A stretch of DNA of 33,059 nucleotides, from assembly GCA_002269645.1 (NCBI GenBank), contig NIVC01002841.1, positions 1-33,059 on the forward strand, written 5' to 3'. This stretch comes from Macrostomum lignano (Eukaryota). Below the pieces are notes generated by a model. That model searched no databases. It was not told the origin of the DNA and saw only the letters and a program-made list of their open reading frames with translations. A program made the translations under genes and the position numbers. Below, piece after piece: positions 1-33,059 of the stretch (within the stretch, counting starts at the first letter, position 1; every line of letters begins with the position of its first letter).

Positions 1-602
1 CTCATCAAGGCGGCGCTTGTACTCTGCCAGCTCCGCGTTCAGTCGCTGCATCGCTCCGGGTCTAGCTGAATGCTGCAGCGCGGCTCGCGCCTGCTCCACC
101 GACGTCAGCACCGAGGCGTCGAACAGTCCGATGCGATTCAGACGCGCCAGTCGCTCGATCGTAGCGTCAAACAGTGCCGCGTTCATTGCCGCGTCCTCGA
201 CGACCGGCTCAGCTTCTGGCTCTTCCTCCTCCTGTTCTGGCGCTGCAGCTTCCGCCTGTTCAGCTGCGGTGATCTCATCAAGGCGGCGCTTGTACTCTGC
301 CAGCTCCGCGTTCAGTCGCTGCATCGCTCCGGGTCTAGCTGAATGCTGCAGCGCGGCTCGCGCCTGCTCCACCGACGTCAGCACCGAGGCGTCGAACAGT
401 CCGATGCGATTCAGACGCGCCAGTCGCTCGATCGTAGCGTCAAACAGTGCCGCGTTCATTGCCGCGTCCTCGACGACCGGCTCAGCTTCTGGCTCTTCCT
501 CCTCCTGTTCTGGCGCTGCAGCTTCCGCCTGTTCAGCTGCGGTGATCTCATCAAGGCGGCGCTTGTACTCTGCCAGCTCCGCGTTCAGTCGCTGCATCGC
601 TC
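1..602 (-). CDS. Frameshifted continuation of the giant protein (about 2.2 more array-B units, open at the window edge)
   Basis: Positions 1-602 are identical to the 273-bp consensus but offset by 1 nt. Unit starts fall at 70, 343, then 615 instead of 616. Confidence 0.7.
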
Positions 603-6600: not shown

Positions 6601-9600
6601 ATCGCTCCGGGTCTAGCTGAATGCTGCAGCGCGGCTCGCGCCTGCTCCACCGACGTCAGCACCGAGGCGTCGAACAGTCCGATGCGATTCAGACGCGCCA
6701 GTCGCTCGATCGTAGCGTCAAACAGTGCCGCGTTCATTGCCGCGTCCTCGACGACCGGCTCAGCTTCTGGCTCTTCCTCCTCCTGTTCTGGCGCTGCAGC
6801 TTCCGCCTGTTCAGCTGCGGTGATCTCATCAAGGCGGCGCTTGTACTCTGCCAGCTCCGCGTTCAGTCGCTGCATCGCTCCGGGTCTAGCTGAATGCTGC
6901 AGCGCGGCTCGCGCCTGCTCCACCGACGTCAGCACCGAGGCGTCGAACAGTCCGATGCGATTCAGACGCGCCAGTCGCTCGATCGTAGCGTCAAACAGTG
7001 CCGCGTTCATTGCCGCGTCCTCGACGACCGGCTCAGCTTCTGGCTCTTCCTCCTCCTGTTCTGGCGCTGCAGCTTCCGCCTGTTCAGCTGCGGTGATCTC
7101 ATCAAGGCGGCGCTTGTACTCTGCCAGCTCCGCGTTCAGTCGCTGCATCGCTCCGGGTCTAGCTGAATGCTGCAGCGCGGCTCGCGCCTGCTCCACCGAC
7201 GTCAGCACCGAGGCGTCGAACAGTCCGATGCGATTCAGACGCGCCAGTCGCTCGATCGTAGCGTCAAACAGTGCCGCGTTCATTGCCGCGTCCTCGACGA
7301 CCGGCTCAGCTTCTGGCTCTTCCTCCTCCTGTTCTGGCGCTGCAGCTTCCGCCTGTTCAGCTGCGGTGATCTCATCAAGGCGGCGCTTGTACTCTGCCAG
7401 CTCCGCGTTCAGTCGCTGCATCGCTCCGGGTCTAGCTGAATGCTGCAGCGCGGCTCGCGCCTGCTCCACCGACGTCAGCACCGAGGCGTCGAACAGTCCG
7501 ATGCGATTCAGACGCGCCAGTCGCTCGATCGTAGCGTCAAACAGTGCCGCGTTCATTGCCGCGTCCTCGACGACCGGCTCAGCTTCTGGCTCTTCCTCCT
7601 CCTGTTCTGGCGCTGCAGCTTCCGCCTGTTCAGCTGCGGTGATCTCATCAAGGCGGCGCTTGTACTCTGCCAGCTCCGCGTTCAGTCGCTGCATCGCTCC
7701 GGGTCTAGCTGAATGCTGCAGCGCGGCTCGCGCCTGCTCCACCGACGTCAGCACCGAGGCGTCGAACAGTCCGATGCGATTCAGACGCGCCAGTCGCTCG
7801 ATCGTAGCGTCAAACAGTGCCGCGTTCATTGCCGCGTCCTCGACGACCGGCTCAGCTTCTGGCTCTTCCTCCTCCTGTTCTGGCGCTGCAGCTTCCGCCT
7901 GTTCAGCTGCGGTGATCTCATCAAGGCGGCGCTTGTACTCTGCCAGCTCCGCGTTCAGTCGCTGCATCGCTCCGGGTCTAGCTGAATGCTGCAGCGCGGC
8001 TCGCGCCTGCTCCACCGACGTCAGCACCGAGGCGTCGAACAGTCCGATGCGATTCAGACGCGCCAGTCGCTCGATCGTAGCGTCAAACAGTGCCGCGTTC
8101 ATTGCCGCGTCCTCGACGACCGGCTCAGCTTCTGGCTCTTCCTCCTCCTGTTCTGGCGCTGCAGCTTCCGCCTGTTCAGCTGCGGTGATCTCATCAAGGC
8201 GGCGCTTGTACTCTGCCAGCTCCGCGTTCAGTCGCTGCATCGCTCCGGGTCTAGCTGAATGCTGCAGCGCGGCTCGCGCCTGCTCCACCGACGTCAGCAC
8301 CGAGGCGTCGAACAGTCCGATGCGATTCAGACGCGCCAGTCGCTCGATCGTAGCGTCAAACAGTGCCGCGTTCATTGCCGCGTCCTCGACGACCGGCTCA
8401 GCTTCTGGCTCTTCCTCCTCCTGTTCTGGCGCTGCAGCTTCCGCCTGTTCAGCTGCGGTGATCTCATCAAGGCGGCGCTTGTACTCTGCCAGCTCCGCGT
8501 TCAGTCGCTGCATCGCTCCGGGTCTAGCTGAATGCTGCAGCGCGGCTCGCGCCTGCTCCACCGACGTCAGCACCGAGGCGTCGAACAGTCCGATGCGATT
8601 CAGACGCGCCAGTCGCTCGATCGTAGCGTCAAACAGTGCCGCGTTCATTGCCGCGTCCTCGACGACCGGCTCAGCTTCTGGCTCTTCCTCCTCCTGTTCT
8701 GGCGCTGCAGCTTCCGCCTGTTCAGCTGCGGTGATCTCATCAAGGCGGCGCTTGTACTCTGCCAGCTCCGCGTTCAGTCGCTGCATCGCTCCGGGTCTAG
8801 CTGAATGCTGCAGCGCGGCTCGCGCCTGCTCCACCGACGTCAGCACCGAGGCGTCGAACAGTCCGATGCGATTCAGACGCGCCAGTCGCTCGATCGTAGC
8901 GTCAAACAGTGCCGCGTTCATTGCCGCGTCCTCGACGACCGGCTCAGCTTCTGGCTCTTCCTCCTCCTGTTCTGGCGCTGCAGCTTCCGCCTGTTCAGCT
9001 GCGGTGATCTCATCAAGGCGGCGCTTGTACTCTGCCAGCTCCGCGTTCAGTCGCTGCATCGCTCCGGGTCTAGCTGAATGCTGCAGCGCGGCTCGCGCCT
9101 GCTCCACCGACGTCAGCACCGAGGCGTCGAACAGTCCGATGCGATTCAGACGCGCCAGTCGCTCGATCGTAGCGTCAAACAGTGCCGCGTTCATTGCCGC
9201 GTCCTCGACGACCGGCTCAGCTTCTGGCTCTTCCTCCTCCTGTTCTGGCGCTGCAGCTTCCGCCTGTTCAGCTGCGGTGATCTCATCAAGGCGGCGCTTG
9301 TACTCTGCCAGCTCCGCGTTCAGTCGCTGCATCGCTCCGGGTCTAGCTGAATGCTGCAGCGCGGCTCGCGCCTGCTCCACCGACGTCAGCACCGAGGCGT
9401 CGAACAGTCCGATGCGATTCAGACGCGCCAGTCGCTCGATCGTAGCGTCAAACAGTGCCGCGTTCATTGCCGCGTCCTCGACGACCGGCTCAGCTTCTGG
9501 CTCTTCCTCCTCCTGTTCTGGCGCTGCAGCTTCCGCCTGTTCAGCTGCGGTGATCTCATCAAGGCGGCGCTTGTACTCTGCCAGCTCCGCGTTCAGTCGC

Positions 9601-12600
9601 TGCATCGCTCCGGGTCTAGCTGAATGCTGCAGCGCGGCTCGCGCCTGCTCCACCGACGTCAGCACCGAGGCGTCGAACAGTCCGATGCGATTCAGACGCG
9701 CCAGTCGCTCGATCGTAGCGTCAAACAGTGCCGCGTTCATTGCCGCGTCCTCGACGACCGGCTCAGCTTCTGGCTCTTCCTCCTCCTGTTCTGGCGCTGC
9801 AGCTTCCGCCTGTTCAGCTGCGGTGATCTCATCAAGGCGGCGCTTGTACTCTGCCAGCTCCGCGTTCAGTCGCTGCATCGCTCCGGGTCTAGCTGAATGC
9901 TGCAGCGCGGCTCGCGCCTGCTCCACCGACGTCAGCACCGAGGCGTCGAACAGTCCGATGCGATTCAGACGCGCCAGTCGCTCGATCGTAGCGTCAAACA
10001 GTGCCGCGTTCATTGCCGCGTCCTCGACGACCGGCTCAGCTTCTGGCTCTTCCTCCTCCTGTTCTGGCGCTGCAGCTTCCGCCTGTTCAGCTGCGGTGAT
10101 CTCATCAAGGCGGCGCTTGTACTCTGCCAGCTCCGCGTTCAGTCGCTGCATCGCTCCGGGTCTAGCTGAATGCTGCAGCGCGGCTCGCGCCTGCTCCACC
10201 GACGTCAGCACCGAGGCGTCGAACAGTCCGATGCGATTCAGACGCGCCAGTCGCTCGATCGTAGCGTCAAACAGTGCCGCGTTCATTGCCGCGTCCTCGA
10301 CGACCGGCTCAGCTTCTGGCTCTTCCTCCTCCTGTTCTGGCGCTGCAGCTTCCGCCTGTTCAGCTGCGGTGATCTCATCAAGGCGGCGCTTGTACTCTGC
10401 CAGCTCCGCGTTCAGTCGCTGCATCGCTCCGGGTCTAGCTGAATGCTGCAGCGCGGCTCGCGCCTGCTCCACCGACGTCAGCACCGAGGCGTCGAACAGT
10501 CCGATGCGATTCAGACGCGCCAGTCGCTCGATCGTAGCGTCAAACAGTGCCGCGTTCATTGCCGCGTCCTCGACGACCGGCTCAGCTTCTGGCTCTTCCT
10601 CCTCCTGTTCTGGCGCTGCAGCTTCCGCCTGTTCAGCTGCGGTGATCTCATCAAGGCGGCGCTTGTACTCTGCCAGCTCCGCGTTCAGTCGCTGCATCGC
10701 TCCGGGTCTAGCTGAATGCTGCAGCGCGGCTCGCGCCTGCTCCACCGACGTCAGCACCGAGGCGTCGAACAGTCCGATGCGATTCAGACGCGCCAGTCGC
10801 TCGATCGTAGCGTCAAACAGTGCCGCGTTCATTGCCGCGTCCTCGACGACCGGCTCAGCTTCTGGCTCTTCCTCCTCCTGTTCTGGCGCTGCAGCTTCCG
10901 CCTGTTCAGCTGCGGTGATCTCATCAAGGCGGCGCTTGTACTCTGCCAGCTCCGCGTTCAGTCGCTGCATCGCTCCGGGTCTAGCTGAATGCTGCAGCGC
11001 GGCTCGCGCCTGCTCCACCGACGTCAGCACCGAGGCGTCGAACAGTCCGATGCGATTCAGACGCGCCAGTCGCTCGATCGTAGCGTCAAACAGTGCCGCG
11101 TTCATTGCCGCGTCCTCGACGACCGGCTCAGCTTCTGGCTCTTCCTCCTCCTGTTCTGGCGCTGCAGCTTCCGCCTGTTCAGCTGCGGTGATCTCATCAA
11201 GGCGGCGCTTGTACTCTGCCAGCTCCGCGTTCAGTCGCTGCATCGCTCCGGGTCTAGCTGAATGCTGCAGCGCGGCTCGCGCCTGCTCCACCGACGTCAG
11301 CACCGAGGCGTCGAACAGTCCGATGCGATTCAGACGCGCCAGTCGCTCGATCGTAGCGTCAAACAGTGCCGCGTTCATTGCCGCGTCCTCGACGACCGGC
11401 TCAGCTTCTGGCTCTTCCTCCTCCTGTTCTGGCGCTGCAGCTTCCGCCTGTTCAGCTGCGGTGATCTCATCAAGGCGGCGCTTGTACTCTGCCAGCTCCG
11501 CGTTCAGTCGCTGCATCGCTCCGGGTCTAGCTGAATGCTGCAGCGCGGCTCGCGCCTGCTCCACCGACGTCAGCACCGAGGCGTCGAACAGTCCGATGCG
11601 ATTCAGACGCGCCAGTCGCTCGATCGTAGCGTCAAACAGTGCCGCGTTCATTGCCGCGTCCTCGACGACCGGCTCAGCTTCTGGCTCTTCCTCCTCCTGT
11701 TCTGGCGCTGCAGCTTCCGCCTGTTCAGCTGCGGTGATCTCATCAAGGCGGCGCTTGTACTCTGCCAGCTCCGCGTTCAGTCGCTGCATCGCTCCGGGTC
11801 TAGCTGAATGCTGCAGCGCGGCTCGCGCCTGCTCCACCGACGTCAGCACCGAGGCGTCGAACAGTCCGATGCGATTCAGACGCGCCAGTCGCTCGATCGT
11901 AGCGTCAAACAGTGCCGCGTTCATTGCCGCGTCCTCGACGACCGGCTCAGCTTCTGGCTCTTCCTCCTCCTGTTCTGGCGCTGCAGCTTCCGCCTGTTCA
12001 GCTGCGGTGATCTCATCAAGGCGGCGCTTGTACTCTGCCAGCTCCGCGTTCAGTCGCTGCATCGCTCCGGGTCTAGCTGAATGCTGCAGCGCGGCTCGCG
12101 CCTGCTCCACCGACGTCAGCACCGAGGCGTCGAACAGTCCGATGCGATTCAGACGCGCCAGTCGCTCGATCGTAGCGTCAAACAGTGCCGCGTTCATTGC
12201 CGCGTCCTCGACGACCGGCTCAGCTTCTGGCTCTTCCTCCTCCTGTTCTGGCGCTGCAGCTTCCGCCTGTTCAGCTGCGGTGATCTCATCAAGGCGGCGC
12301 TTGTACTCTGCCAGCTCCGCGTTCAGTCGCTGCATCGCTCCGGGTCTAGCTGAATGCTGCAGCGCGGCTCGCGCCTGCTCCACCGACGTCAGCACCGAGG
12401 CGTCGAACAGTCCGATGCGATTCAGACGCGCCAGTCGCTCGATCGTAGCGTCAAACAGTGCCGCGTTCATTGCCGCGTCCTCGACGACCGGCTCAGCTTC
12501 TGGCTCTTCCTCCTCCTGTTCTGGCGCTGCAGCTTCCGCCTGTTCAGCTGCGGTGATCTCATCAAGGCGGCGCTTGTACTCTGCCAGCTCCGCGTTCAGT

Positions 12601-15600
12601 CGCTGCATCGCTCCGGGTCTAGCTGAATGCTGCAGCGCGGCTCGCGCCTGCTCCACCGACGTCAGCACCGAGGCGTCGAACAGTCCGATGCGATTCAGAC
12701 GCGCCAGTCGCTCGATCGTAGCGTCAAACAGTGCCGCGTTCATTGCCGCGTCCTCGACGACCGGCTCAGCTTCTGGCTCTTCCTCCTCCTGTTCTGGCGC
12801 TGCAGCTTCCGCCTGTTCAGCTGCGGTGATCTCATCAAGGCGGCGCTTGTACTCTGCCAGCTCCGCGTTCAGTCGCTGCATCGCTCCGGGTCTAGCTGAA
12901 TGCTGCAGCGCGGCTCGCGCCTGCTCCACCGACGTCAGCACCGAGGCGTCGAACAGTCCGATGCGATTCAGACGCGCCAGTCGCTCGATCGTAGCGTCAA
13001 ACAGTGCCGCGTTCATTGCCGCGTCCTCGACGACCGGCTCAGCTTCTGGCTCTTCCTCCTCCTGTTCTGGCGCTGCAGCTTCCGCCTGTTCAGCTGCGGT
13101 GATCTCATCAAGGCGGCGCTTGTACTCTGCCAGCTCCGCGTTCAGTCGCTGCATCGCTCCGGGTCTAGCTGAATGCTGCAGCGCGGCTCGCGCCTGCTCC
13201 ACCGACGTCAGCACCGAGGCGTCGAACAGTCCGATGCGATTCAGACGCGCCAGTCGCTCGATCGTAGCGTCAAACAGTGCCGCGTTCATTGCCGCGTCCT
13301 CGACGACCGGCTCAGCTTCTGGCTCTTCCTCCTCCTGTTCTGGCGCTGCAGCTTCCGCCTGTTCAGCTGCGGTGATCTCATCAAGGCGGCGCTTGTACTC
13401 TGCCAGCTCCGCGTTCAGTCGCTGCATCGCTCCGGGTCTAGCTGAATGCTGCAGCGCGGCTCGCGCCTGCTCCACCGACGTCAGCACCGAGGCGTCGAAC
13501 AGTCCGATGCGATTCAGACGCGCCAGTCGCTCGATCGTAGCGTCAAACAGTGCCGCGTTCATTGCCGCGTCCTCGACGACCGGCTCAGCTTCTGGCTCTT
13601 CCTCCTCCTGTTCTGGCGCTGCAGCTTCCGCCTGTTCAGCTGCGGTGATCTCATCAAGGCGGCGCTTGTACTCTGCCAGCTCCGCGTTCAGTCGCTGCAT
13701 CGCTCCGGGTCTAGCTGAATGCTGCAGCGCGGCTCGCGCCTGCTCCACCGACGTCAGCACCGAGGCGTCGAACAGTCCGATGCGATTCAGACGCGCCAGT
13801 CGCTCGATCGTAGCGTCAAACAGTGCCGCGTTCATTGCCGCGTCCTCGACGACCGGCTCAGCTTCTGGCTCTTCCTCCTCCTGTTCTGGCGCTGCAGCTT
13901 CCGCCTGTTCAGCTGCGGTGATCTCATCAAGGCGGCGCTTGTACTCTGCCAGCTCCGCGTTCAGTCGCTGCATCGCTCCGGGTCTAGCTGAATGCTGCAG
14001 CGCGGCTCGCGCCTGCTCCACCGACGTCAGCACCGAGGCGTCGAACAGTCCGATGCGATTCAGACGCGCCAGTCGCTCGATCGTAGCGTCAAACAGTGCC
14101 GCGTTCATTGCCGCGTCCTCGACGACCGGCTCAGCTTCTGGCTCTTCCTCCTCCTGTTCTGGCGCTGCAGCTTCCGCCTGTTCAGCTGCGGTGATCTCAT
14201 CAAGGCGGCGCTTGTACTCTGCCAGCTCCGCGTTCAGTCGCTGCATCGCTCCGGGTCTAGCTGAATGCTGCAGCGCGGCTCGCGCCTGCTCCACCGACGT
14301 CAGCACCGAGGCGTCGAACAGTCCGATGCGATTCAGACGCGCCAGTCGCTCGATCGTAGCGTCAAACAGTGCCGCGTTCATTGCCGCGTCCTCGACGACC
14401 GGCTCAGCTTCTGGCTCTTCCTCCTCCTGTTCTGGCGCTGCAGCTTCCGCCTGTTCAGCTGCGGTGATCTCATCAAGGCGGCGCTTGTACTCTGCCAGCT
14501 CCGCGTTCAGTCGCTGCATCGCTCCGGGTCTAGCTGAATGCTGCAGCGCGGCTCGCGCCTGCTCCACCGACGTCAGCACCGAGGCGTCGAACAGTCCGAT
14601 GCGATTCAGACGCGCCAGTCGCTCGATCGTAGCGTCAAACAGTGCCGCGTTCATTGCCGCGTCCTCGACGACCGGCTCAGCTTCTGGCTCTTCCTCCTCC
14701 TGTTCTGGCGCTGCAGCTTCCGCCTGTTCAGCTGCGGTGATCTCATCAAGGCGGCGCTTGTACTCTGCCAGCTCCGCGTTCAGTCGCTGCATCGCTCCGG
14801 GTCTAGCTGAATGCTGCAGCGCGGCTCGCGCCTGCTCCACCGACGTCAGCACCGAGGCGTCGAACAGTCCGATGCGATTCAGACGCGCCAGTCGCTCGAT
14901 CGTAGCGTCAAACAGTGCCGCGTTCATTGCCGCGTCCTCGACGACCGGCTCAGCTTCTGGCTCTTCCTCCTCCTGTTCTGGCGCTGCAGCTTCCGCCTGT
15001 TCAGCTGCGGTGATCTCATCAAGGCGGCGCTTGTACTCTGCCAGCTCCGCGTTCAGTCGCTGCATCGCTCCGGGTCTAGCTGAATGCTGCAGCGCGGCTC
15101 GCGCCTGCTCCACCGACGTCAGCACCGAGGCGTCGAACAGTCCGATGCGATTCAGACGCGCCAGTCGCTCGATCGTAGCGTCAAACAGTGCCGCGTTCAT
15201 TGCCGCGTCCTCGACGACCGGCTCAGCTTCTGGCTCTTCCTCCTCCTGTTCTGGCGCTGCAGCTTCCGCCTGTTCAGCTGCGGTGATCTCATCAAGGCGG
15301 CGCTTGTACTCTGCCAGCTCCGCGTTCAGTCGCTGCATCGCTCCGGGTCTAGCTGAATGCTGCAGCGCGGCTCGCGCCTGCTCCACCGACGTCAGCACCG
15401 AGGCGTCGAACAGTCCGATGCGATTCAGACGCGCCAGTCGCTCGATCGTAGCGTCAAACAGTGCCGCGTTCATTGCCGCGTCCTCGACGACCGGCTCAGC
15501 TTCTGGCTCTTCCTCCTCCTGTTCTGGCGCTGCAGCTTCCGCCTGTTCAGCTGCGGTGATCTCATCAAGGCGGCGCTTGTACTCTGCCAGCTCCGCGTTC

Positions 15601-18600
15601 AGTCGCTGCATCGCTCCGGGTCTAGCTGAATGCTGCAGCGCGGCTCGCGCCTGCTCCACCGACGTCAGCACCGAGGCGTCGAACAGTCCGATGCGATTCA
15701 GACGCGCCAGTCGCTCGATCGTAGCGTCAAACAGTGCCGCGTTCATTGCCGCGTCCTCGACGACCGGCTCAGCTTCTGGCTCTTCCTCCTCCTGTTCTGG
15801 CGCTGCAGCTTCCGCCTGTTCAGCTGCGGTGATCTCATCAAGGCGGCGCTTGTACTCTGCCAGCTCCGCGTTCAGTCGCTGCATCGCTCCGGGTCTAGCT
15901 GAATGCTGCAGCGCGGCTCGCGCCTGCTCCACCGACGTCAGCACCGAGGCGTCGAACAGTCCGATGCGATTCAGACGCGCCAGTCGCTCGATCGTAGCGT
16001 CAAACAGTGCCGCGTTCATTGCCGCGTCCTCGACGACCGGCTCAGCTTCTGGCTCTTCCTCCTCCTGTTCTGGCGCTGCAGCTTCCGCCTGTTCAGCTGC
16101 GGTGATCTCATCAAGGCGGCGCTTGTACTCTGCCAGCTCCGCGTTCAGTCGCTGCATCGCTCCGGGTCTAGCTGAATGCTGCAGCGCGGCTCGCGCCTGC
16201 TCCACCGACGTCAGCACCGAGGCGTCGAACAGTCCGATGCGATTCAGACGCGCCAGTCGCTCGATCGTAGCGTCAAACAGTGCCGCGTTCATTGCCGCGT
16301 CCTCGACGACCGGCTCAGCTTCTGGCTCTTCCTCCTCCTGTTCTGGCGCTGCAGCTTCCGCCTGTTCAGCTGCGGTGATCTCATCAAGGCGGCGCTTGTA
16401 CTCTGCCAGCTCCGCGTTCAGTCGCTGCATCGCTCCGGGTCTAGCTGAATGCTGCAGCGCGGCTCGCGCCTGCTCCACCGACGTCAGCACCGAGGCGTCG
16501 AACAGTCCGATGCGATTCAGACGCGCCAGTCGCTCGATCGTAGCGTCAAACAGTGCCGCGTTCATTGCCGCGTCCTCGACGACCGGCTCAGCTTCTGGCT
16601 CTTCCTCCTCCTGTTCTGGCGCTGCAGCTTCCGCCTGTTCAGCTGCGGTGATCTCATCAAGGCGGCGCTTGTACTCTGCCAGCTCCGCGTTCAGTCGCTG
16701 CATCGCTCCGGGTCTAGCTGAATGCTGCAGCGCGGCTCGCGCCTGCTCCACCGACGTCAGCACCGAGGCGTCGAACAGTCCGATGCGATTCAGACGCGCC
16801 AGTCGCTCGATCGTAGCGTCAAACAGTGCCGCGTTCATTGCCGCGTCCTCGACGACCGGCTCAGCTTCTGGCTCTTCCTCCTCCTGTTCTGGCGCTGCAG
16901 CTTCCGCCTGTTCAGCTGCGGTGATCTCATCAAGGCGGCGCTTGTACTCTGCCAGCTCCGCGTTCAGTCGCTGCATCGCTCCGGGTCTAGCTGAATGCTG
17001 CAGCGCGGCTCGCGCCTGCTCCACCGACGTCAGCACCGAGGCGTCGAACAGTCCGATGCGATTCAGACGCGCCAGTCGCTCGATCGTAGCGTCAAACAGT
17101 GCCGCGTTCATTGCCGCGTCCTCGACGACCGGCTCAGCTTCTGGCTCTTCCTCCTCCTGTTCTGGCGCTGCAGCTTCCGCCTGTTCAGCTGCGGTGATCT
17201 CATCAAGGCGGCGCTTGTACTCTGCCAGCTCCGCGTTCAGTCGCTGCATCGCTCCGGGTCTAGCTGAATGCTGCAGCGCGGCTCGCGCCTGCTCCACCGA
17301 CGTCAGCACCGAGGCGTCGAACAGTCCGATGCGATTCAGACGCGCCAGTCGCTCGATCGTAGCGTCAAACAGTGCCGCGTTCATTGCCGCGTCCTCGACG
17401 ACCGGCTCAGCTTCTGGCTCTTCCTCCTCCTGTTCTGGCGCTGCAGCTTCCGCCTGTTCAGCTGCGGTGATCTCATCAAGGCGGCGCTTGTACTCTGCCA
17501 GCTCCGCGTTCAGTCGCTGCATCGCTCCGGGTCTAGCTGAATGCTGCAGCGCGGCTCGCGCCTGCTCCACCGACGTCAGCACCGAGGCGTCGAACAGTCC
17601 GATGCGATTCAGACGCGCCAGTCGCTCGATCGTAGCGTCAAACAGTGCCGCGTTCATTGCCGCGTCCTCGACGACCGGCTCAGCTTCTGGCTCTTCCTCC
17701 TCCTGTTCTGGCGCTGCAGCTTCCGCCTGTTCAGCTGCGGTGATCTCATCAAGGCGGCGCTTGTACTCTGCCAGCTCCGCGTTCAGTCGCTGCATCGCTC
17801 CGGGTCTAGCTGAATGCTGCAGCGCGGCTCGCGCCTGCTCCACCGACGTCAGCACCGAGGCGTCGAACAGTCCGATGCGATTCAGACGCGCCAGTCGCTC
17901 GATCGTAGCGTCAAACAGTGCCGCGTTCATTGCCGCGTCCTCGACGACCGGCTCAGCTTCTGGCTCTTCCTCCTCCTGTTCTGGCGCTGCAGCTTCCGCC
18001 TGTTCAGCTGCGGTGATCTCATCAAGGCGGCGCTTGTACTCTGCCAGCTCCGCGTTCAGTCGCTGCATCGCTCCGGGTCTAGCTGAATGCTGCAGCGCGG
18101 CTCGCGCCTGCTCCACCGACGTCAGCACCGAGGCGTCGAACAGTCCGATGCGATTCAGACGCGCCAGTCGCTCGATCGTAGCGTCAAACAGTGCCGCGTT
18201 CATTGCCGCGTCCTCGACGACCGGCTCAGCTTCTGGCTCTTCCTCCTCCTGTTCTGGCGCTGCAGCTTCCGCCTGTTCAGCTGCGGTGATCTCATCAAGG
18301 CGGCGCTTGTACTCTGCCAGCTCCGCGTTCAGTCGCTGCATCGCTCCGGGTCTAGCTGAATGCTGCAGCGCGGCTCGCGCCTGCTCCACCGACGTCAGCA
18401 CCGAGGCGTCGAACAGTCCGATGCGATTCAGACGCGCCAGTCGCTCGATCGTAGCGTCAAACAGTGCCGCGTTCATTGCCGCGTCCTCGACGACCGGCTC
18501 AGCTTCTGGCTCTTCCTCCTCCTGTTCTGGCGCTGCAGCTTCCGCCTGTTCAGCTGCGGTGATCTCATCAAGGCGGCGCTTGTACTCTGCCAGCTCCGCG

Positions 18601-20395
18601 TTCAGTCGCTGCATCGCTCCGGGTCTAGCTGAATGCTGCAGCGCGGCTCGCGCCTGCTCCACCGACGTCAGCACCGAGGCGTCGAACAGTCCGATGCGAT
18701 TCAGACGCGCCAGTCGCTCGATCGTAGCGTCAAACAGTGCCGCGTTCATTGCCGCGTCCTCGACGACCGGCTCAGCTTCTGGCTCTTCCTCCTCCTGTTC
18801 TGGCGCTGCAGCTTCCGCCTGTTCAGCTGCGGTGATCTCATCAAGGCGGCGCTTGTACTCTGCCAGCTCCGCGTTCAGTCGCTGCATCGCTCCGGGTCTA
18901 GCTGAATGCTGCAGCGCGGCTCGCGCCTGCTCCACCGACGTCAGCACCGAGGCGTCGAACAGTCCGATGCGATTCAGACGCGCCAGTCGCTCGATCGTAG
19001 CGTCAAACAGTGCCGCGTTCATTGCCGCGTCCTCGACGACCGGCTCAGCTTCTGGCTCTTCCTCCTCCTGTTCTGGCGCTGCAGCTTCCGCCTGTTCAGC
19101 TGCGGTGATCTCATCAAGGCGGCGCTTGTACTCTGCCAGCTCCGCGTTCAGTCGCTGCATCGCTCCGGGTCTAGCTGAATGCTGCAGCGCGGCTCGCGCC
19201 TGCTCCACCGACGTCAGCACCGAGGCGTCGAACAGTCCGATGCGATTCAGACGCGCCAGTCGCTCGATCGTAGCGTCAAACAGTGCCGCGTTCATTGCCG
19301 CGTCCTCGACGACCGGCTCAGCTTCTGGCTCTTCCTCCTCCTGTTCTGGCGCTGCAGCTTCCGCCTGTTCAGCTGCGGTGATCTCATCAAGGCGGCGCTT
19401 GTACTCTGCCAGCTCCGCGTTCAGTCGCTGCATCGCTCCGGGTCTAGCTGAATGCTGCAGCGCGGCTCGCGCCTGCTCCACCGACGTCAGCACCGAGGCG
19501 TCGAACAGTCCGATGCGATTCAGACGCGCCAGTCGCTCGATCGTAGCGTCAAACAGTGCCGCGTTCATTGCCGCGTCCTCGACGACCGGCTCAGCTTCTG
19601 GCTCTTCCTCCTCCTGTTCTGGCGCTGCAGCTTCCGCCTGTTCAGCTGCGGTGATCTCATCAAGGCGGCGCTTGTACTCTGCCAGCTCCGCGTTCAGTCG
19701 CTGCATCGCTCCGGGTCTAGCTGAATGCTGCAGCGCGGCTCGCGCCTGCTCCACCGACGTCAGCACCGAGGCGTCGAACAGTCCGATGCGATTCAGACGC
19801 GCCAGTCGCTCGATCGTAGCGTCAAACAGTGCCGCGTTCATTGCCGCGTCCTCGACGACCGGCTCAGCTTCTGGCTCTTCCTCCTCCTGTTCTGGCGCTG
19901 CAGCTTCCGCCTGTTCAGCTGCGGTGATCTCATCAAGGCGGCGCTTGTACTCTGCCAGCTCCGCGTTCAGTCGCTGCATCGCTCCGGGTCTAGCTGAATG
20001 CTGCAGCGCGGCTCGCGCCTGCTCCACCGACGTCAGCACCGAGGCGTCGAACAGTCCGATGCGATTCAGACGCGCCAGTCGCTCGATCGTAGCGTCAAAC
20101 AGTGCCGCGTTCATTGCCGCGTCCTCGACGACCGGCTCAGCTTCTGGCTCTTCCTCCTCCTGTTCTGGCGCTGCAGCTTCCGCCTGTTCAGCTGCGGTGA
20201 TCTCATCAAGGCGGCGCTTGTACTCTGCCAGCTCCGCGTTCAGTCGCTGCATCGCTCCGGGTCTAGCTGAATGCTGCAGCGCGGCTCGCGCCTGCTCCAC
20301 CGACGTCAGCACCGAGGCGTCGAACAGTCCGATGCGATTCAGACGCGCCAGTCGCTCGATCGTAGCGTCAAACAGTGCCGCGTTCATTGCCGCGT
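1..20395 (-). repeat. Array B: at least 74.7 tandem copies of a 273-bp (91-aa) unit, AAMNAALFDATIERLARLNRIGLFDASVLTSVEQARAALQHSARPGAMQRLNAELAEYKRRLDEITAAEQAEAAAPEQEEEEPEAEPVVED
   Basis: The period is exactly 273 nt (ORF starts 615, 888 ... 20271, i.e. 72 steps). Translations are identical in three frames in every copy. The consensus match ends at 20395 (gccgcgt|tttct). The unit is about 64% GC (174/273 by hand count). Confidence 0.99.
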
Positions 20396-23300
20396 TTTCT
20401 TTTTTGGTTTCCTGCTTTTGTTCGTATTGGAATTCTATTGTGTCTGCGATTTCGTTTCGGAATGGTAGCATTTTTGGGAGTGAGTCTGTTGTTTTTTGTT
20501 GTATTTGCCATAATCCGGTCGAAAGTATGTAGTTTCTAGTGTGATCAAAGTCTTTGGTGTAAATATGCAGTAGTCGCTTGAACCTTCCCAGTGCTTGTCG
20601 TCCTACTGGTGCACTTTGACCTTTAGTGAGCTGATGCTGAAGGCCTTTCTCTGCATGCAAAAATATGGATAAAAACTTTTTCCAAGTGGACCCCTCCGTT
20701 AATAGTAAACGAGGCGCTTGATAAAGAAAGCTTCTAGTTGACTCAGTTAGAAATTCATATCGGAGTTTTTTAAGAGGAATCCGGAGTAAAGAGCATTGGA
20801 TCGCCTCACAATAGTAGTCTGTAGCTTCTGAGATATGGCCTATCGCAGTTTTCATTGACAGTTCAAAACGTACCATGTCGCTGTTTAGAAGTGCGTACTT
20901 GTTTAGCATGGCTAAACAATTAGACAATTCTGCTGAAAAATCTGCAACCAAGAATTTATTCATTGATACCATCGATATTTGAAGACCGTGCCAATATGAT
21001 CTTCTACTATGTAAAATTTCCAGTTGACGATGTATCGAATTAAAAAATTCTGATAAATTCACGTTCCTACACGACGACAGTTGATTCTCCGAATTCGATG
21101 CAATTTCTATCCAATATGAGATTTGAGCAACTTCAGCAGTATGCCGTTCTGAGATCCATGACCAAAACTTACACCGCATTAGCTCTACCATAGTCTGACG
21201 AAGAGGCGAAACAAGGAACTGGATCAACTCGGCAGACCTTGCGATCCGTAGCTGCTGTAAAACTCCTTTCACAAGAAAACTCGAATGGCAAAGCTGGACC
21301 CCGGATGCTAGGCTACGAATGCCAGGCCGAAGCTCTTGCAAAAACATTGGGCGAGCGTCCACCAGTTTATGGAGACCATGTACCAGAGGCATAGGAGACA
21401 AGGAATCAGACGGATAAACAGAGCACAAGAAGTTAATCTGGTCCACTAAGTCTTTCCAACGCTGCTGCTCGGTTACCTTGTTTTCCTGACCAATAACCGT
21501 CAACATTGACGCTTGCTTCTTGTAAGAATCCAACGCACCGTCGAGGCGTTCCATCGATCCGGGTGTTGCACCACTCGACAGCAGAGCCCGTGCCATTCCG
21601 ACAGATGTCAGCACCGACTCGTCATACAGTCCAGACGCCTTCAACTTGTTCAGCCTCGAGATCATCAGCTCCGTCACAGCCGCGCTGGTCGGTGCTGCTT
21701 CCTCTGGCGGCTGCTTTGACTCGACACGCTTTCCAACCTCGTCCGTGGAAACCTGTGGCTTCTCGACCTCAGCTGCAGGAGCTTCTGACTTTGGAGTCTC
21801 GTCCGGTTGTACGCCATCTTCCTTGTCAACGACAGCCGCGGCCAGAAGAGCGTCTCTATCTGACGCTTGCTTCTTGTAAGAATCCAACGCACCGTCGAGG
21901 CGTTCCATCGATCCGGGTGTTGCACCACTCGACAGCAGAGCCCGTGCCATTCCGACAGATGTCAGCACCGACTCGTCATACAGTCCAGACGCCTTCAACT
22001 TGTTCAGCCTCGAGATCATCAGCTCCGTCACAGCCGCGCTGGTCGGTGCTGCTTCCTCTGGCGGCTGCTTTGACTCGACACGCTTTCCAACCTCGTCCGT
22101 GGAAACCTGTGGCTTCTCGACCTCAGCTGCAGGAGCTTCTGACTTTGGAGTCTCGTCCGGTTGTACGCCATCTTCCTTGTCAACGACAGCCGCGGCCAGA
22201 AGAGCGTCTCTATCTGACGCTTGCTTCTTGTAAGAATCCAACGCACCGTCGAGGCGTTCCATCGATCCGGGTGTTGCACCACTCGACAGCAGAGCCCGTG
22301 CCATTCCGACAGATGTCAGCACCGACTCGTCATACAGTCCAGACGCCTTCAACTTGTTCAGCCTCGAGATCATCAGCTCCGTCACAGCCGCGCTGGTCGG
22401 TGCTGCTTCCTCTGGCGGCTGCTTTGACTCGACACGCTTTCCAACCTCGTCCGTGGAAACCTGTGGCTTCTCGACCTCAGCTGCAGGAGCTTCTGACTTT
22501 GGAGTCTCGTCCGGTTGTACGCCATCTTCCTTGTCAACGACAGCCGCGGCCAGAAGAGCGTCTCTATCTGACGCTTGCTTCTTGTAAGAATCCAACGCAC
22601 CGTCGAGGCGTTCCATCGATCCGGGTGTTGCACCACTCGACAGCAGAGCCCGTGCCATTCCGACAGATGTCAGCACCGACTCGTCATACAGTCCAGACGC
22701 CTTCAACTTGTTCAGCCTCGAGATCATCAGCTCCGTCACAGCCGCGCTGGTCGGTGCTGCTTCCTCTGGCGGCTGCTTTGACTCGACACGCTTTCCAACC
22801 TCGTCCGTGGAAACCTGTGGCTTCTCGACCTCAGCTGCAGGAGCTTCTGACTTTGGAGTCTCGTCCGGTTGTACGCCATCTTCCTTGTCAACGACAGCCG
22901 CGGCCAGAAGAGCGTCTCTATCTGACGCTTGCTTCTTGTAAGAATCCAACGCACCGTCGAGGCGTTCCATCGATCCGGGTGTTGCACCACTCGACAGCAG
23001 AGCCCGTGCCATTCCGACAGATGTCAGCACCGACTCGTCATACAGTCCAGACGCCTTCAACTTGTTCAGCCTCGAGATCATCAGCTCCGTCACAGCCGCG
23101 CTGGTCGGTGCTGCTTCCTCTGGCGGCTGCTTTGACTCGACACGCTTTCCAACCTCGTCCGTGGAAACCTGTGGCTTCTCGACCTCAGCTGCAGGAGCTT
23201 CTGACTTTGGAGTCTCGTCCGGTTGTACGCCATCTTCCTTGTCAACGACAGCCGCGGCCAGAAGAGCGTCTCTATCTGACGCTTGCTTCTTGTAAGAATC

Positions 23301-26300
23301 CAACGCACCGTCGAGGCGTTCCATCGATCCGGGTGTTGCACCACTCGACAGCAGAGCCCGTGCCATTCCGACAGATGTCAGCACCGACTCGTCATACAGT
23401 CCAGACGCCTTCAACTTGTTCAGCCTCGAGATCATCAGCTCCGTCACAGCCGCGCTGGTCGGTGCTGCTTCCTCTGGCGGCTGCTTTGACTCGACACGCT
23501 TTCCAACCTCGTCCGTGGAAACCTGTGGCTTCTCGACCTCAGCTGCAGGAGCTTCTGACTTTGGAGTCTCGTCCGGTTGTACGCCATCTTCCTTGTCAAC
23601 GACAGCCGCGGCCAGAAGAGCGTCTCTATCTGACGCTTGCTTCTTGTAAGAATCCAACGCACCGTCGAGGCGTTCCATCGATCCGGGTGTTGCACCACTC
23701 GACAGCAGAGCCCGTGCCATTCCGACAGATGTCAGCACCGACTCGTCATACAGTCCAGACGCCTTCAACTTGTTCAGCCTCGAGATCATCAGCTCCGTCA
23801 CAGCCGCGCTGGTCGGTGCTGCTTCCTCTGGCGGCTGCTTTGACTCGACACGCTTTCCAACCTCGTCCGTGGAAACCTGTGGCTTCTCGACCTCAGCTGC
23901 AGGAGCTTCTGACTTTGGAGTCTCGTCCGGTTGTACGCCATCTTCCTTGTCAACGACAGCCGCGGCCAGAAGAGCGTCTCTATCTGACGCTTGCTTCTTG
24001 TAAGAATCCAACGCACCGTCGAGGCGTTCCATCGATCCGGGTGTTGCACCACTCGACAGCAGAGCCCGTGCCATTCCGACAGATGTCAGCACCGACTCGT
24101 CATACAGTCCAGACGCCTTCAACTTGTTCAGCCTCGAGATCATCAGCTCCGTCACAGCCGCGCTGGTCGGTGCTGCTTCCTCTGGCGGCTGCTTTGACTC
24201 GACACGCTTTCCAACCTCGTCCGTGGAAACCTGTGGCTTCTCGACCTCAGCTGCAGGAGCTTCTGACTTTGGAGTCTCGTCCGGTTGTACGCCATCTTCC
24301 TTGTCAACGACAGCCGCGGCCAGAAGAGCGTCTCTATCTGACGCTTGCTTCTTGTAAGAATCCAACGCACCGTCGAGGCGTTCCATCGATCCGGGTGTTG
24401 CACCACTCGACAGCAGAGCCCGTGCCATTCCGACAGATGTCAGCACCGACTCGTCATACAGTCCAGACGCCTTCAACTTGTTCAGCCTCGAGATCATCAG
24501 CTCCGTCACAGCCGCGCTGGTCGGTGCTGCTTCCTCTGGCGGCTGCTTTGACTCGACACGCTTTCCAACCTCGTCCGTGGAAACCTGTGGCTTCTCGACC
24601 TCAGCTGCAGGAGCTTCTGACTTTGGAGTCTCGTCCGGTTGTACGCCATCTTCCTTGTCAACGACAGCCGCGGCCAGAAGAGCGTCTCTATCTGACGCTT
24701 GCTTCTTGTAAGAATCCAACGCACCGTCGAGGCGTTCCATCGATCCGGGTGTTGCACCACTCGACAGCAGAGCCCGTGCCATTCCGACAGATGTCAGCAC
24801 CGACTCGTCATACAGTCCAGACGCCTTCAACTTGTTCAGCCTCGAGATCATCAGCTCCGTCACAGCCGCGCTGGTCGGTGCTGCTTCCTCTGGCGGCTGC
24901 TTTGACTCGACACGCTTTCCAACCTCGTCCGTGGAAACCTGTGGCTTCTCGACCTCAGCTGCAGGAGCTTCTGACTTTGGAGTCTCGTCCGGTTGTACGC
25001 CATCTTCCTTGTCAACGACAGCCGCGGCCAGAAGAGCGTCTCTATCTGACGCTTGCTTCTTGTAAGAATCCAACGCACCGTCGAGGCGTTCCATCGATCC
25101 GGGTGTTGCACCACTCGACAGCAGAGCCCGTGCCATTCCGACAGATGTCAGCACCGACTCGTCATACAGTCCAGACGCCTTCAACTTGTTCAGCCTCGAG
25201 ATCATCAGCTCCGTCACAGCCGCGCTGGTCGGTGCTGCTTCCTCTGGCGGCTGCTTTGACTCGACACGCTTTCCAACCTCGTCCGTGGAAACCTGTGGCT
25301 TCTCGACCTCAGCTGCAGGAGCTTCTGACTTTGGAGTCTCGTCCGGTTGTACGCCATCTTCCTTGTCAACGACAGCCGCGGCCAGAAGAGCGTCTCTATC
25401 TGACGCTTGCTTCTTGTAAGAATCCAACGCACCGTCGAGGCGTTCCATCGATCCGGGTGTTGCACCACTCGACAGCAGAGCCCGTGCCATTCCGACAGAT
25501 GTCAGCACCGACTCGTCATACAGTCCAGACGCCTTCAACTTGTTCAGCCTCGAGATCATCAGCTCCGTCACAGCCGCGCTGGTCGGTGCTGCTTCCTCTG
25601 GCGGCTGCTTTGACTCGACACGCTTTCCAACCTCGTCCGTGGAAACCTGTGGCTTCTCGACCTCAGCTGCAGGAGCTTCTGACTTTGGAGTCTCGTCCGG
25701 TTGTACGCCATCTTCCTTGTCAACGACAGCCGCGGCCAGAAGAGCGTCTCTATCTGACGCTTGCTTCTTGTAAGAATCCAACGCACCGTCGAGGCGTTCC
25801 ATCGATCCGGGTGTTGCACCACTCGACAGCAGAGCCCGTGCCATTCCGACAGATGTCAGCACCGACTCGTCATACAGTCCAGACGCCTTCAACTTGTTCA
25901 GCCTCGAGATCATCAGCTCCGTCACAGCCGCGCTGGTCGGTGCTGCTTCCTCTGGCGGCTGCTTTGACTCGACACGCTTTCCAACCTCGTCCGTGGAAAC
26001 CTGTGGCTTCTCGACCTCAGCTGCAGGAGCTTCTGACTTTGGAGTCTCGTCCGGTTGTACGCCATCTTCCTTGTCAACGACAGCCGCGGCCAGAAGAGCG
26101 TCTCTATCTGACGCTTGCTTCTTGTAAGAATCCAACGCACCGTCGAGGCGTTCCATCGATCCGGGTGTTGCACCACTCGACAGCAGAGCCCGTGCCATTC
26201 CGACAGATGTCAGCACCGACTCGTCATACAGTCCAGACGCCTTCAACTTGTTCAGCCTCGAGATCATCAGCTCCGTCACAGCCGCGCTGGTCGGTGCTGC

Positions 26301-29300
26301 TTCCTCTGGCGGCTGCTTTGACTCGACACGCTTTCCAACCTCGTCCGTGGAAACCTGTGGCTTCTCGACCTCAGCTGCAGGAGCTTCTGACTTTGGAGTC
26401 TCGTCCGGTTGTACGCCATCTTCCTTGTCAACGACAGCCGCGGCCAGAAGAGCGTCTCTATCTGACGCTTGCTTCTTGTAAGAATCCAACGCACCGTCGA
26501 GGCGTTCCATCGATCCGGGTGTTGCACCACTCGACAGCAGAGCCCGTGCCATTCCGACAGATGTCAGCACCGACTCGTCATACAGTCCAGACGCCTTCAA
26601 CTTGTTCAGCCTCGAGATCATCAGCTCCGTCACAGCCGCGCTGGTCGGTGCTGCTTCCTCTGGCGGCTGCTTTGACTCGACACGCTTTCCAACCTCGTCC
26701 GTGGAAACCTGTGGCTTCTCGACCTCAGCTGCAGGAGCTTCTGACTTTGGAGTCTCGTCCGGTTGTACGCCATCTTCCTTGTCAACGACAGCCGCGGCCA
26801 GAAGAGCGTCTCTATCTGACGCTTGCTTCTTGTAAGAATCCAACGCACCGTCGAGGCGTTCCATCGATCCGGGTGTTGCACCACTCGACAGCAGAGCCCG
26901 TGCCATTCCGACAGATGTCAGCACCGACTCGTCATACAGTCCAGACGCCTTCAACTTGTTCAGCCTCGAGATCATCAGCTCCGTCACAGCCGCGCTGGTC
27001 GGTGCTGCTTCCTCTGGCGGCTGCTTTGACTCGACACGCTTTCCAACCTCGTCCGTGGAAACCTGTGGCTTCTCGACCTCAGCTGCAGGAGCTTCTGACT
27101 TTGGAGTCTCGTCCGGTTGTACGCCATCTTCCTTGTCAACGACAGCCGCGGCCAGAAGAGCGTCTCTATCTGACGCTTGCTTCTTGTAAGAATCCAACGC
27201 ACCGTCGAGGCGTTCCATCGATCCGGGTGTTGCACCACTCGACAGCAGAGCCCGTGCCATTCCGACAGATGTCAGCACCGACTCGTCATACAGTCCAGAC
27301 GCCTTCAACTTGTTCAGCCTCGAGATCATCAGCTCCGTCACAGCCGCGCTGGTCGGTGCTGCTTCCTCTGGCGGCTGCTTTGACTCGACACGCTTTCCAA
27401 CCTCGTCCGTGGAAACCTGTGGCTTCTCGACCTCAGCTGCAGGAGCTTCTGACTTTGGAGTCTCGTCCGGTTGTACGCCATCTTCCTTGTCAACGACAGC
27501 CGCGGCCAGAAGAGCGTCTCTATCTGACGCTTGCTTCTTGTAAGAATCCAACGCACCGTCGAGGCGTTCCATCGATCCGGGTGTTGCACCACTCGACAGC
27601 AGAGCCCGTGCCATTCCGACAGATGTCAGCACCGACTCGTCATACAGTCCAGACGCCTTCAACTTGTTCAGCCTCGAGATCATCAGCTCCGTCACAGCCG
27701 CGCTGGTCGGTGCTGCTTCCTCTGGCGGCTGCTTTGACTCGACACGCTTTCCAACCTCGTCCGTGGAAACCTGTGGCTTCTCGACCTCAGCTGCAGGAGC
27801 TTCTGACTTTGGAGTCTCGTCCGGTTGTACGCCATCTTCCTTGTCAACGACAGCCGCGGCCAGAAGAGCGTCTCTATCTGACGCTTGCTTCTTGTAAGAA
27901 TCCAACGCACCGTCGAGGCGTTCCATCGATCCGGGTGTTGCACCACTCGACAGCAGAGCCCGTGCCATTCCGACAGATGTCAGCACCGACTCGTCATACA
28001 GTCCAGACGCCTTCAACTTGTTCAGCCTCGAGATCATCAGCTCCGTCACAGCCGCGCTGGTCGGTGCTGCTTCCTCTGGCGGCTGCTTTGACTCGACACG
28101 CTTTCCAACCTCGTCCGTGGAAACCTGTGGCTTCTCGACCTCAGCTGCAGGAGCTTCTGACTTTGGAGTCTCGTCCGGTTGTACGCCATCTTCCTTGTCA
28201 ACGACAGCCGCGGCCAGAAGAGCGTCTCTATCTGACGCTTGCTTCTTGTAAGAATCCAACGCACCGTCGAGGCGTTCCATCGATCCGGGTGTTGCACCAC
28301 TCGACAGCAGAGCCCGTGCCATTCCGACAGATGTCAGCACCGACTCGTCATACAGTCCAGACGCCTTCAACTTGTTCAGCCTCGAGATCATCAGCTCCGT
28401 CACAGCCGCGCTGGTCGGTGCTGCTTCCTCTGGCGGCTGCTTTGACTCGACACGCTTTCCAACCTCGTCCGTGGAAACCTGTGGCTTCTCGACCTCAGCT
28501 GCAGGAGCTTCTGACTTTGGAGTCTCGTCCGGTTGTACGCCATCTTCCTTGTCAACGACAGCCGCGGCCAGAAGAGCGTCTCTATCTGACGCTTGCTTCT
28601 TGTAAGAATCCAACGCACCGTCGAGGCGTTCCATCGATCCGGGTGTTGCACCACTCGACAGCAGAGCCCGTGCCATTCCGACAGATGTCAGCACCGACTC
28701 GTCATACAGTCCAGACGCCTTCAACTTGTTCAGCCTCGAGATCATCAGCTCCGTCACAGCCGCGCTGGTCGGTGCTGCTTCCTCTGGCGGCTGCTTTGAC
28801 TCGACACGCTTTCCAACCTCGTCCGTGGTAACCTGTGGCTTCTCGACCTCAGCTGCAGGAGCTTCTGACTTTGGAGTCTCGTCCGGTTGTACGCCATCTT
28901 CCTTGTCAACGACAGCCGCGGCCAGAAGAGCGTCTCTATCTGACGCTTGCTTCTTGTAAGAATCCAACGCACCGTCGAGGCGTTCCATCGATCCGGGTGT
29001 TGCACCACTCGACAGCAGAGCCCGTGCCATTCCGACAGATGTCAGCACCGACTCGTCATACAGTCCAGACGCCTTCAACTTGTTCAGCCTCGAGATCATC
29101 AGCTCCGTCACAGCCGCGCTGGTCGGTGCTGCTTCCTCTGGCGGCTGCTTTGACTCGACACGCTTTCCAACCTCGTCCGTGGTAACCTGTGGCTTCTCGA
29201 CCTCAGCTGCAGGAGCTTCTGACTTTGGAGTCTCGTCCGGTTGTACGCCATCTTCCTTGTCAACGACAGCCGCGGCCAGAAGAGCGTCTCTATCTGACGC

Positions 29301-30623: not shown

Positions 30624-31960
30624 CGGTATTATAAAATCCGTATAGTTTGGTTACTTCAAGGAACATGTTTTAGACTTGTTATTTTGTGGCGTTGAAGTTA
30701 AATAACGTAATTTTTGGCCATAAAAATTAACGATGAATGTTGATTAGGAAAGGCTTTTATTAAATTATGGCTCAGAGATCAAGCGCGACTTTTAGCGGTT
30801 GCGGCCTACATGTAACCATAGACACTACTATATATGTAGGAGATTGCGTGTTTTTCAAACATTCTATGCCTTGAGTCTTAGGAAGTGTTGTGTAGGGACC
30901 ACACAGCATGACGTGGTTGACTACAGAGAATTGAGCTAACACAGAGCGCCATATTTGTATTTTAAGCCGAAGCCAAAATCCCAATTCCTCAGTCTCCTAC
31001 TTTTCGACCATCGGCAAGAAGTCAAAAGATAGGAGTATATAGGGTATACAAAGCATTCATGCAATCTATTTCTTAATATGGAAGTATCAAAAATTTAATG
31101 GGCTGAAGAAACTGCAGATGTCCGTTCATTTATTCAATGTGTAGTGAGGCATCTGTCGTATTTGAAAATATCGTAAAAAGAACCGACTCGACATCTAACA
31201 ATCGGCTTAAAGTTTGGGAAATTATGCTACAAATACTCGCAGACACAGGTAATAAATTAGTAAGTCGTTGAATTGCAAATATTTGTTTCTAGCCAGACCG
31301 ACGGAGGAACTCTTCGACTGCGACTGGCTGTGTGTTGAGACCGTCTCATTGAACAAATTCAGCCGCTGAAGCTATGCTGGAGCATTGGAAACCAGGCACT
31401 AAGCTGTATATAATGGAGAGGGCAAAGCCACAACGTACCTGTCAATTATTCAATATGTCAGGCTGTGACTTTATAAACGCATCTTTTTCGTCATTCAAGA
31501 CCCATTCTTTAGCCGCAGAATGCCGAATTGTCCTATGCTGCCAGCTACGAGTATTCGCTCGATATGCGCAAATAGACTACTAACGATGAGAAGCCTGTAA
31601 GTAGTTATACTAAATAAATAAACGCTAGAAAAGTACAAGAAAGTGTTTCGAAAGTTTAGACACATGCTAAACGTTTGTTCTCTTAATTGGTTCGCACTAA
31701 ATGAACAGGAAAAAACTAGAGATAAGTATGTAAAATAGGAATAATAATTATTAGTTGGCCGAGAACAAGCATCTTTGAGGCGGAGATAACGGTTTCGCTA
31801 AAACATAGTCAAATTTTGAATTAATTGTGACGTTCGACACAAAGAAGCTTTTATATAAATGCGAGGCATTTAAAACATTTTTCGTTCAACAAAAACAGAG
31901 TTCAAGATTTTTAGGTAGATGGATTTAGCAGGTTTAGGCTCTGTTTAGGAGGCTCAAGAT
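30596..31960. other. AT-rich non-coding upstream/intergenic region
   Basis: It has many A/T tracts, only two ~70-aa ORFs with no recognisable character, and no repeats or RNA-gene signatures that I could see. Confidence 0.6.
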
Positions 31961-32907: not shown

Positions 32908-33059
32908 TATGGTTCAAATTCAAGCGTGTTCATATTTCAGAAAGCTAGATTTTTCAAAGTTTAGAAGGCTCAATAGGTTCAGTGACTCCTCGAGTCTCGG
33001 GTGACTCAGGCGACTCCTGTGACTCAGAGGCGATCTTCAGCCGAGGCAAAGGCGGCTCA

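Follow-up and report, generated by a model that had tools for sequence, protein, structure and literature searches.

Two tandem arrays at a Macrostomum lignano locus, probably diverged copies of one small helical module within a single giant gene

Small three-helix modules repeated in tandem are known from several protein families. FIVAR and GA modules are repeated in the cell-wall proteins of Gram-positive bacteria, and in Ebh, a giant bacterial protein, FIVAR copies follow one another in a very long tandem array. Spectrins are intracellular tandem three-helix bundles with mechanical or scaffold roles; their units, of ~106 amino acids (aa), are divergent and joined by continuous helices, with no disordered linkers. 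The flatworm Macrostomum lignano itself makes a giant repeat protein, adhesion protein 2 (Mlig-ap2), of 14,794 aa, whose central part consists of 21 repeats of 255 aa followed by 25 repeats of 221 aa; this glycosylated, secreted protein also contains vWD, TIL, LDL-receptor and TSP-1 domains (PMC6410801). We describe here a locus of the same species, contained in a stretch of 33,059 nucleotides (nt) that we call the window (contig NIVC01002841.1 of assembly GCA_002269645.1, positions 1 to 33,059 of the forward strand). Read 5' to 3', its minus strand holds a first tandem array (A), then a segment that we name mid1, then a second array (B) that continues to the window end; sister copies of the locus add a second segment (mid2), a third array (C) and a tail. 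The arrays A and B are, we think it likely, diverged copies of one small helical module within a single giant gene.

This gene resembles Mlig-ap2 in belonging to the same species, in being giant and in having two consecutive arrays of long, near-identical repeats. It is not Mlig-ap2, however, because its vWD, TIL, LDLR and TSP-1 domains are absent here: none of them occurs in the units, mid1, mid2 or the tail, there is no signal peptide, and the units measure 118, 91 and 98 aa. With FIVAR and GA proteins it shares small, here predicted, three-helix modules, many repeats and very large size, but it is a eukaryotic gene with acidic linkers and no secretion signal. The likeness to spectrin lies in the tandem three-helix plan; the units here are 91 to 118 aa long, of which ~75 are helical, and they are identical and separated by linkers. 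Finally, the linkers, acidic and rich in Pro, Glu, Val and Lys, recall the PEVK region of titin, in composition only and with no homology claimed, and the gene lacks the Ig and Fn3 domains of titin.

An open reading frame (ORF) of 10,012 codons occupies positions 585..30623 of the minus strand in the ORF listing. Over this region, Tandem Repeats Finder delimits array A (21507..30566, minus strand) as 25.6 copies of a 354-bp (118-aa) unit with 99% matches, and array B (1..20395, minus strand) as at least 74.7 copies of a 273-bp (91-aa) unit, also with 99% matches, which run off the window end. Each A unit comprises a 56-aa core, a helix extension and a linker rich in Pro, Glu, Val and Lys; each B unit pairs the same core with a short linker that is strongly acidic. 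These four residues make up 41-62% of the linkers overall (53% in A and 62% in B), and the units contain neither Cys nor Trp and have a net charge of -7 to -10. A cores recur every 118 aa, 26 in all; B cores recur every 91 aa, with 72 of them in frame. The last A core (AAVTELMISRL...DSYKK, 21516..21683, minus strand) and the first B core (AALFDATIERL...AEYKR, 20214..20381, minus strand), both located by sequence match, enclose mid1, which translation shows to be open over 378 codons (20382..21515, minus strand). This segment begins with a Met, is unique in sequence, has ~49% guanine plus cytosine (GC), is predicted to be all-helical and contains 7 Cys and 7 Trp. Both its junctions, with A and with B, are in frame and without a stop codon.

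A sequence-only reading of the window had proposed, for 20200-21700, that the two arrays share a 56-aa module. The last A core and the first B core both fall in that span, and the alignment bears the proposal out: 28 of the 56 residues are identical, without a gap, with a BLOSUM62 score of 126. When B was shuffled 2000 times, the best local score averaged 20.7 (standard deviation 3.7) and never exceeded 40, which places the real score at z ~28, and shuffled identity averaged 4.5 with a maximum of 13 of 56; the match is therefore not compositional. Similarity persists in DNA, as the same reading had maintained, with 97 of 168 core nucleotides (58%) identical, and so do the two remnants that it quoted: both GTCAGCACCGA and ACAGTCC are found a single time per unit, which gives 26 occurrences in A and 75 in B. 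Array C carries the same type of core, 23 of 56 residues being identical between A and C and 30 of 56 between B and C, so that the cores are 41-54% identical overall. Of the twenty positions that are invariant across the three cores, 17 fall in predicted helices. Among the twenty, helix 1 contributes RL..L, helix 2 RA.L and helix 3 RL...L..Y, and others belong to the turn G[LP][FY]DxSV[LV]TSV.

That this similarity belongs to a protein is seen by comparing reading frames. An alternative account takes the arrays for non-coding, satellite-like repeats, of which the ORF and the "module" would be by-products arising in GC-rich repeated DNA. Tandem and simple repeats do make up ~15% of the M. lignano genome (PMC5730564), a 16-bp satellite lies just upstream, frame-breaking insertions or deletions (indels) are present, and the plus strand too has ORFs of thousands of codons over the arrays (343-20532, 6729 codons; 21506-28831, 2441 codons). 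Indeed, the length of an ORF by itself is meaningless in GC-rich in-frame repeats. Nevertheless, the ends of the plus-strand ORFs coincide exactly with the sites of a unit variant of array A, a Ser/Thr change on the minus strand that creates TAA on the plus strand (28829, 29183 and 29891, found by unit comparison), and the minus strand is therefore the coding one. The antisense frames open in A and in B are different relative frames, and across mid1 the minus-strand frame is the only one that stays open. When the aligned A and B cores are compared in all six frames, the highest amino acid identity (28/56, against at most 23/55 elsewhere) and the largest synonymous share of the differences both fall in the sense frame; the similarity among A, B and C is likewise highest at the protein level in the coding frame, with a synonymous excess. 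The three unit lengths, 354, 273 and 294 bp, are different and are all multiples of 3, a single frame is open through two unique, AT-richer domains of ~380 codons each, and gene models based on RNA sequencing (RNA-seq) exist. Taken with these observations, the satellite account appears very improbable. Base composition follows the layout of the coding arrays: GC is highest in the arrays (B, 64%; A, 58%), falls to ~49-51% in 1-kb windows over mid1 and is 38-49% upstream. Codons rich in Ala and Glu account for part of the array GC (first-position GC of 0.67-0.79), and GC-biased gene conversion in recombining arrays is a possible further source.

The sequence-only reading had also held that the two cores diverged under purifying selection, and this part of it fared less well. 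By the Nei-Gojobori method, the ratio of non-synonymous to synonymous change (dN/dS) in the core is 0.51 for A-B (proportions of synonymous and non-synonymous differences, 0.56 and 0.37), 0.37 for A-C and 0.67 for B-C, dS being ~1 or higher for A-B and A-C and ~0.5 for B-C; the synonymous excess between A and B gives a Fisher p of 0.02. Because dN/dS is ~0.4-0.7 with dS saturated, purifying selection is only moderately supported: it is consistent with these comparisons, which are not strong evidence for it. The invariant helix and turn pattern is a better argument for constraint than dN/dS.

The fold of the module was predicted with AlphaFold2 (AF2) from the A core with its flanks, B being given as the sole aligned sequence. 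The model has three helices, at residues 4-24, 29-42 and 48-78, with a predicted local distance difference test (pLDDT) score of 83.5 and a predicted template modelling score of 0.70, in agreement with the three-helix layout suggested earlier from the sequence. As ~20 residues of the predicted helix 3 lie past the end of the 56-aa core, the module as folded probably measures ~75 aa, and the core is probably only a part of it. The earlier statement that the linkers of A and B do not align thus holds broadly, except that in the A model what follows the core begins with the continuation of helix 3. For mid1, a single-sequence AF2 model is unreliable (pLDDT 38).

The same layout had led the sequence-only reading to a loose comparison with FIVAR and GA bundles. 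It might accordingly be supposed that the module is a diverged eukaryotic member of the FIVAR, GA, protein A or spectrin families, from which a ligand- or surface-binding function could be transferred; the three-helix layout, the similar size and the very long tandem array would speak for this. The searches do not. At E<=10, a hmmscan against Pfam-A gave no match of any kind for the A and B units, FIVAR (PF07554), GA (PF01468) and Spectrin (PF00435) included. Pfam-A has no match for mid1, mid2 or the tail either. The nine-unit C protein (P0002) likewise has no FIVAR match in Pfam. Two other families were considered for it and set aside. Spectrin scores 18.1 bits, below a cut-off of 29.9, with E = 0.004 for the whole protein and no single stretch past the threshold. 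The 77 bits of HBM (PF16591, 254 positions) are the sum of eight short stretches, the best of which covers only positions 177-224; this match was rejected because the score is inflated by the repeats and no full-length match was obtained, and single A and B units do not match HBM. A search of PDB sequences with a two-unit A sequence or an A/B/C profile returned no GA or albumin-binding chain, the best profile match (E = 0.009) being an unrelated aldolase-derived design. In a Foldseek search of the PDB with the AF2 model nothing fell below E = 1, and FIVAR, GA, protein A and spectrin were not in the best 50 of the 62 matches at E<=10; the best match, with E = 1.0 and a template modelling score of 0.73, was the helical part of a fragment of human alanyl-tRNA synthetase, C-Ala.

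When 1.84 billion representative proteins were searched exhaustively with HMMER, using a profile of A and B, convincing relatives were found in M. lignano only (P0001, P0002 and P0003). No bacterial or archaeal relative of the module appeared in 185,579 genomes, and none in metagenome scans; queries with mid1 by itself, and with a profile of mid1 and mid2, retrieved only the sister copy. Several weak matches were examined and discarded. Three non-flatworm proteins (P0004, P0005 and P0006) match 22-28 profile positions and look compositional, and P0008 is a villin-headpiece repeat protein. The hypothetical protein MBY0442813.1 (P0007), from a metagenome-assembled genome of Mycobacteriaceae, has a repeated motif, L..LN.SGL[FY]DAS.LT.I, resembling helix 1 and the turn (profile E = 1e-6, pairwise E = 0.001); its likeness is probably convergent or due to chance. 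Membership in one of the known three-helix families is thus, of all the alternatives considered here, the one to which we give least credit, and the module is an orphan domain of a family absent from Pfam.

The remainder of the gene was reconstructed from sister copies. The sole close database match is a hypothetical protein of M. lignano, BOX15_Mlig011518g2 (P0001), which is 99% identical to mid1. The contig of its gene model, NIVC01002842.1 of the same assembly, has the same layout as the window, and the model extends from array A into mid1. That assembly, produced by Canu from PacBio reads, is rich in duplicated sequence, and its gene models derive from RNA-seq (PMC5730564); because the gene model belongs to this annotation, it indicates transcription of the locus. 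The window represents a sister copy of distinct sequence, whether a homeologue, an allele or a redundant contig, with ~1% base differences in mid1 and an upstream region that is 97% identical. On the sister sequence L002, array B (~47 units) is followed by the unique mid2 and then by array C, which has 23.6 copies of a unit of ~289-294 bp. The contig L003 (NIVC01001166.1) carries a single unbroken frame from array B through mid2 into array C, with both the B/mid2 and the mid2/C junctions in frame and without a stop codon; at another place on this contig, a unique tail of ~150 aa and then a stop codon come after array C. A gap of 14 N at 8561-8574 of L003 connects a forward array C with a reversed segment that holds arrays B and C with mid2 between them; this is probably a scaffold join in the wrong orientation. 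The 98-aa C unit, with its A/B-type core, is represented in GenBank by PAA71394.1, which has nine units. Like mid1, mid2 is a unique, AT-richer domain of ~380 codons, and the sequences of the two indicate that they are paralogues: tblastn aligns 170 aa of them with E = 3e-23, and 26% of residues are identical along the full length. Pieced together from the sister copies, the composite full protein would reach ~13,000 aa.

One may ask whether these parts belong to a single protein, since ~7% of the assembled M. lignano transcripts are multi-gene precursors cut by trans-splicing (PMC5730564). Array A, mid1 with array B, and mid2 with array C could then be separate trans-spliced mRNAs and proteins, in keeping with the g1 and g2 suffixes of the public models and with the Met that opens mid1. 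Four successive junctions (A/mid1 and mid1/B in the window, B/mid2 and mid2/C on L003) are nonetheless in frame and without a stop, which is not expected of independent cistrons, and P0001 itself spans array A into mid1. We regard a polycistronic unit as unlikely and retain a single gene.

The frame of this gene is interrupted at single bases. The probable start codon (MERKSSEKA..., 30593..30595, minus strand) is recognised from its counterpart on the sister contig L001, which is in frame with array A and whose ATG (MERKSSEKASKQPPEE...) has an in-frame stop 19 codons upstream. In the window the ATG at 30595 is out of frame because one G has been lost from a GG run ~45 nt downstream, near 30550-30551 (GAGGAAG to GAGAAG). 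At the other end, the listed ORF stops at 585 because one B unit has lost a G of a GG run at 601 (minus strand; CCCGGAGCG to CCCGAGCG by comparison of units), probably a long-read error; past this break, array B continues unchanged down to base 1. On L001, two further single bases are missing from CC runs close to where mid1 ends. Each of the four frame-breaking indels is a deletion in a 2-base homopolymer run, and they lie at different sites in different copies; we infer that they are long-read errors of the PacBio type.

Upstream of the gene, a TATAATA motif (30627-30633, minus strand) begins 38 nt before the probable ATG at 30595; it is a possible TATA box, and the 5' untranslated region would in that case be very short. 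The 16-bp satellite mentioned above (GGTTCAGGGATCAGTG on the plus strand, ~59 copies with 86% matches by Tandem Repeats Finder, 31967-32907) is situated ~1.4 kb upstream of the gene and recurs at the sister locus, at 2430-3365 of L001, where additional satellites of 21 and 32 bp flank it. The plus-strand ORFs at 32519-33004 lie mostly inside this satellite and are likely spurious. A bacterial promoter and terminator scan of the locus, irrelevant for a eukaryote, was empty, and the literature on satellite DNA that was searched added nothing.

The arrays are extremely uniform. Among the 26 units of array A there are only four DNA variants, 21 units being identical, and 72 consecutive in-frame units of array B are identical in DNA. 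Near-identity within each array stands against 58% core DNA identity between the arrays, while one frame runs through A, mid1 and B and the units measure 354 and 273 bp: this is the pattern of concerted evolution, and it upholds the earlier proposal that an ancestral module was duplicated and diverged, each copy then being amplified separately. That history was incomplete in one respect, for it missed array C and the paralogy of mid1 and mid2. Since the two segments are paralogous and a third array exists, the duplicated unit was probably larger than the module and consisted, to judge from these sequences, of a ~380-aa domain plus its array. Such a block, a helical domain with its module array, would have been duplicated within the gene and its copies would have diverged; each array would then have expanded and presumably been kept uniform by unequal crossing-over or gene conversion, leaving arrays that are internally uniform and differ from each other in unit length and sequence. 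Constraint would have been focused on the ~20 core positions of the hydrophobic helix faces and the G[LP][FY]DxSV[LV]TSV turn, the linkers being free to change. Duplication followed by divergence is an ordinary route of repeat-protein evolution.

Sister copies also differ in copy number: array A has 25.6 units in the window and 16.6 in the sister copy, and array B at least 74.7 and ~47, respectively. The consensus A and B units are nevertheless base-for-base identical in the window, L001/L002 and L003, whereas the unique parts differ by 1-3%. This identity across copies could reflect gene conversion between homeologous loci or, equally, the pooling of reads during assembly polishing.

Several observations weigh against a single intact giant gene with paralogous arrays. 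The window ORF is broken twice (~30550 and 601) and the sister copy at two other places, and some copies may be true pseudogenes. The public annotation splits the locus into partial gene models, and the single mRNA of ~40 kb is one that we infer. Assembly and polishing of long identical repeats could distort both copy numbers and unit identity. The AF2 alignment comprised just two sequences, and the dN/dS values of 0.4-0.7, for which dS has reached or nearly reached saturation in the A-B and A-C pairs, give no more than moderate evidence of constraint. In the M. lignano literature searched, no expression-site, phenotype or peptide evidence was found; in particular, the full texts and paper supplements searched for expression or phenotype contain no mention of Mlig011518, Mlig012374 or Mlig009675. 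Lastly, any functional reading is drawn solely from composition and predicted structure. Even so, the in-frame junctions, the sense-frame similarity of the cores and the uniformity of the units make diverged arrays of one module in a single gene the likely interpretation.

As to function, no signal peptide or membrane segment was found in the N-terminus and mid1, the N-terminus being hydrophilic and mid1 devoid of a hydrophobic segment. We tentatively propose, on the grounds just stated, a non-secreted structural, spacer or elastic protein with a beads-on-a-string organisation, in which flexible acidic linkers would separate the small helical modules. Its length would be set by copy number, and the linkers, possibly together with reversible unfolding of the modules, would give it extensibility. 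A fuller and somewhat more doubtful proposal is that a ~13,000-aa protein, confined to M. lignano or its closest relatives and built on a newly evolved three-helix module, acts as a tunable intracellular spring or spacer in a flatworm-specific structure, its arrays being kept identical by ongoing gene conversion both within arrays and between homeologous copies in this neopolyploid.

Giant tandem-repeat proteins with paralogous sub-arrays under concerted evolution are a kind already known, and the finding touches no long-standing open question; the domain itself is without known relatives. The locus also shows that the public annotation has divided a single very large gene among a number of "hypothetical protein, partial" entries. 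For M. lignano, it adds a second kind of giant multi-array repeat protein beside the adhesive proteins, and a domain family outside Pfam without detectable relatives beyond this species. With coding arrays that are extremely uniform and occur in several homeologous copies, the locus could conveniently serve the study of concerted evolution and of copy-number change in coding repeats after genome duplication.

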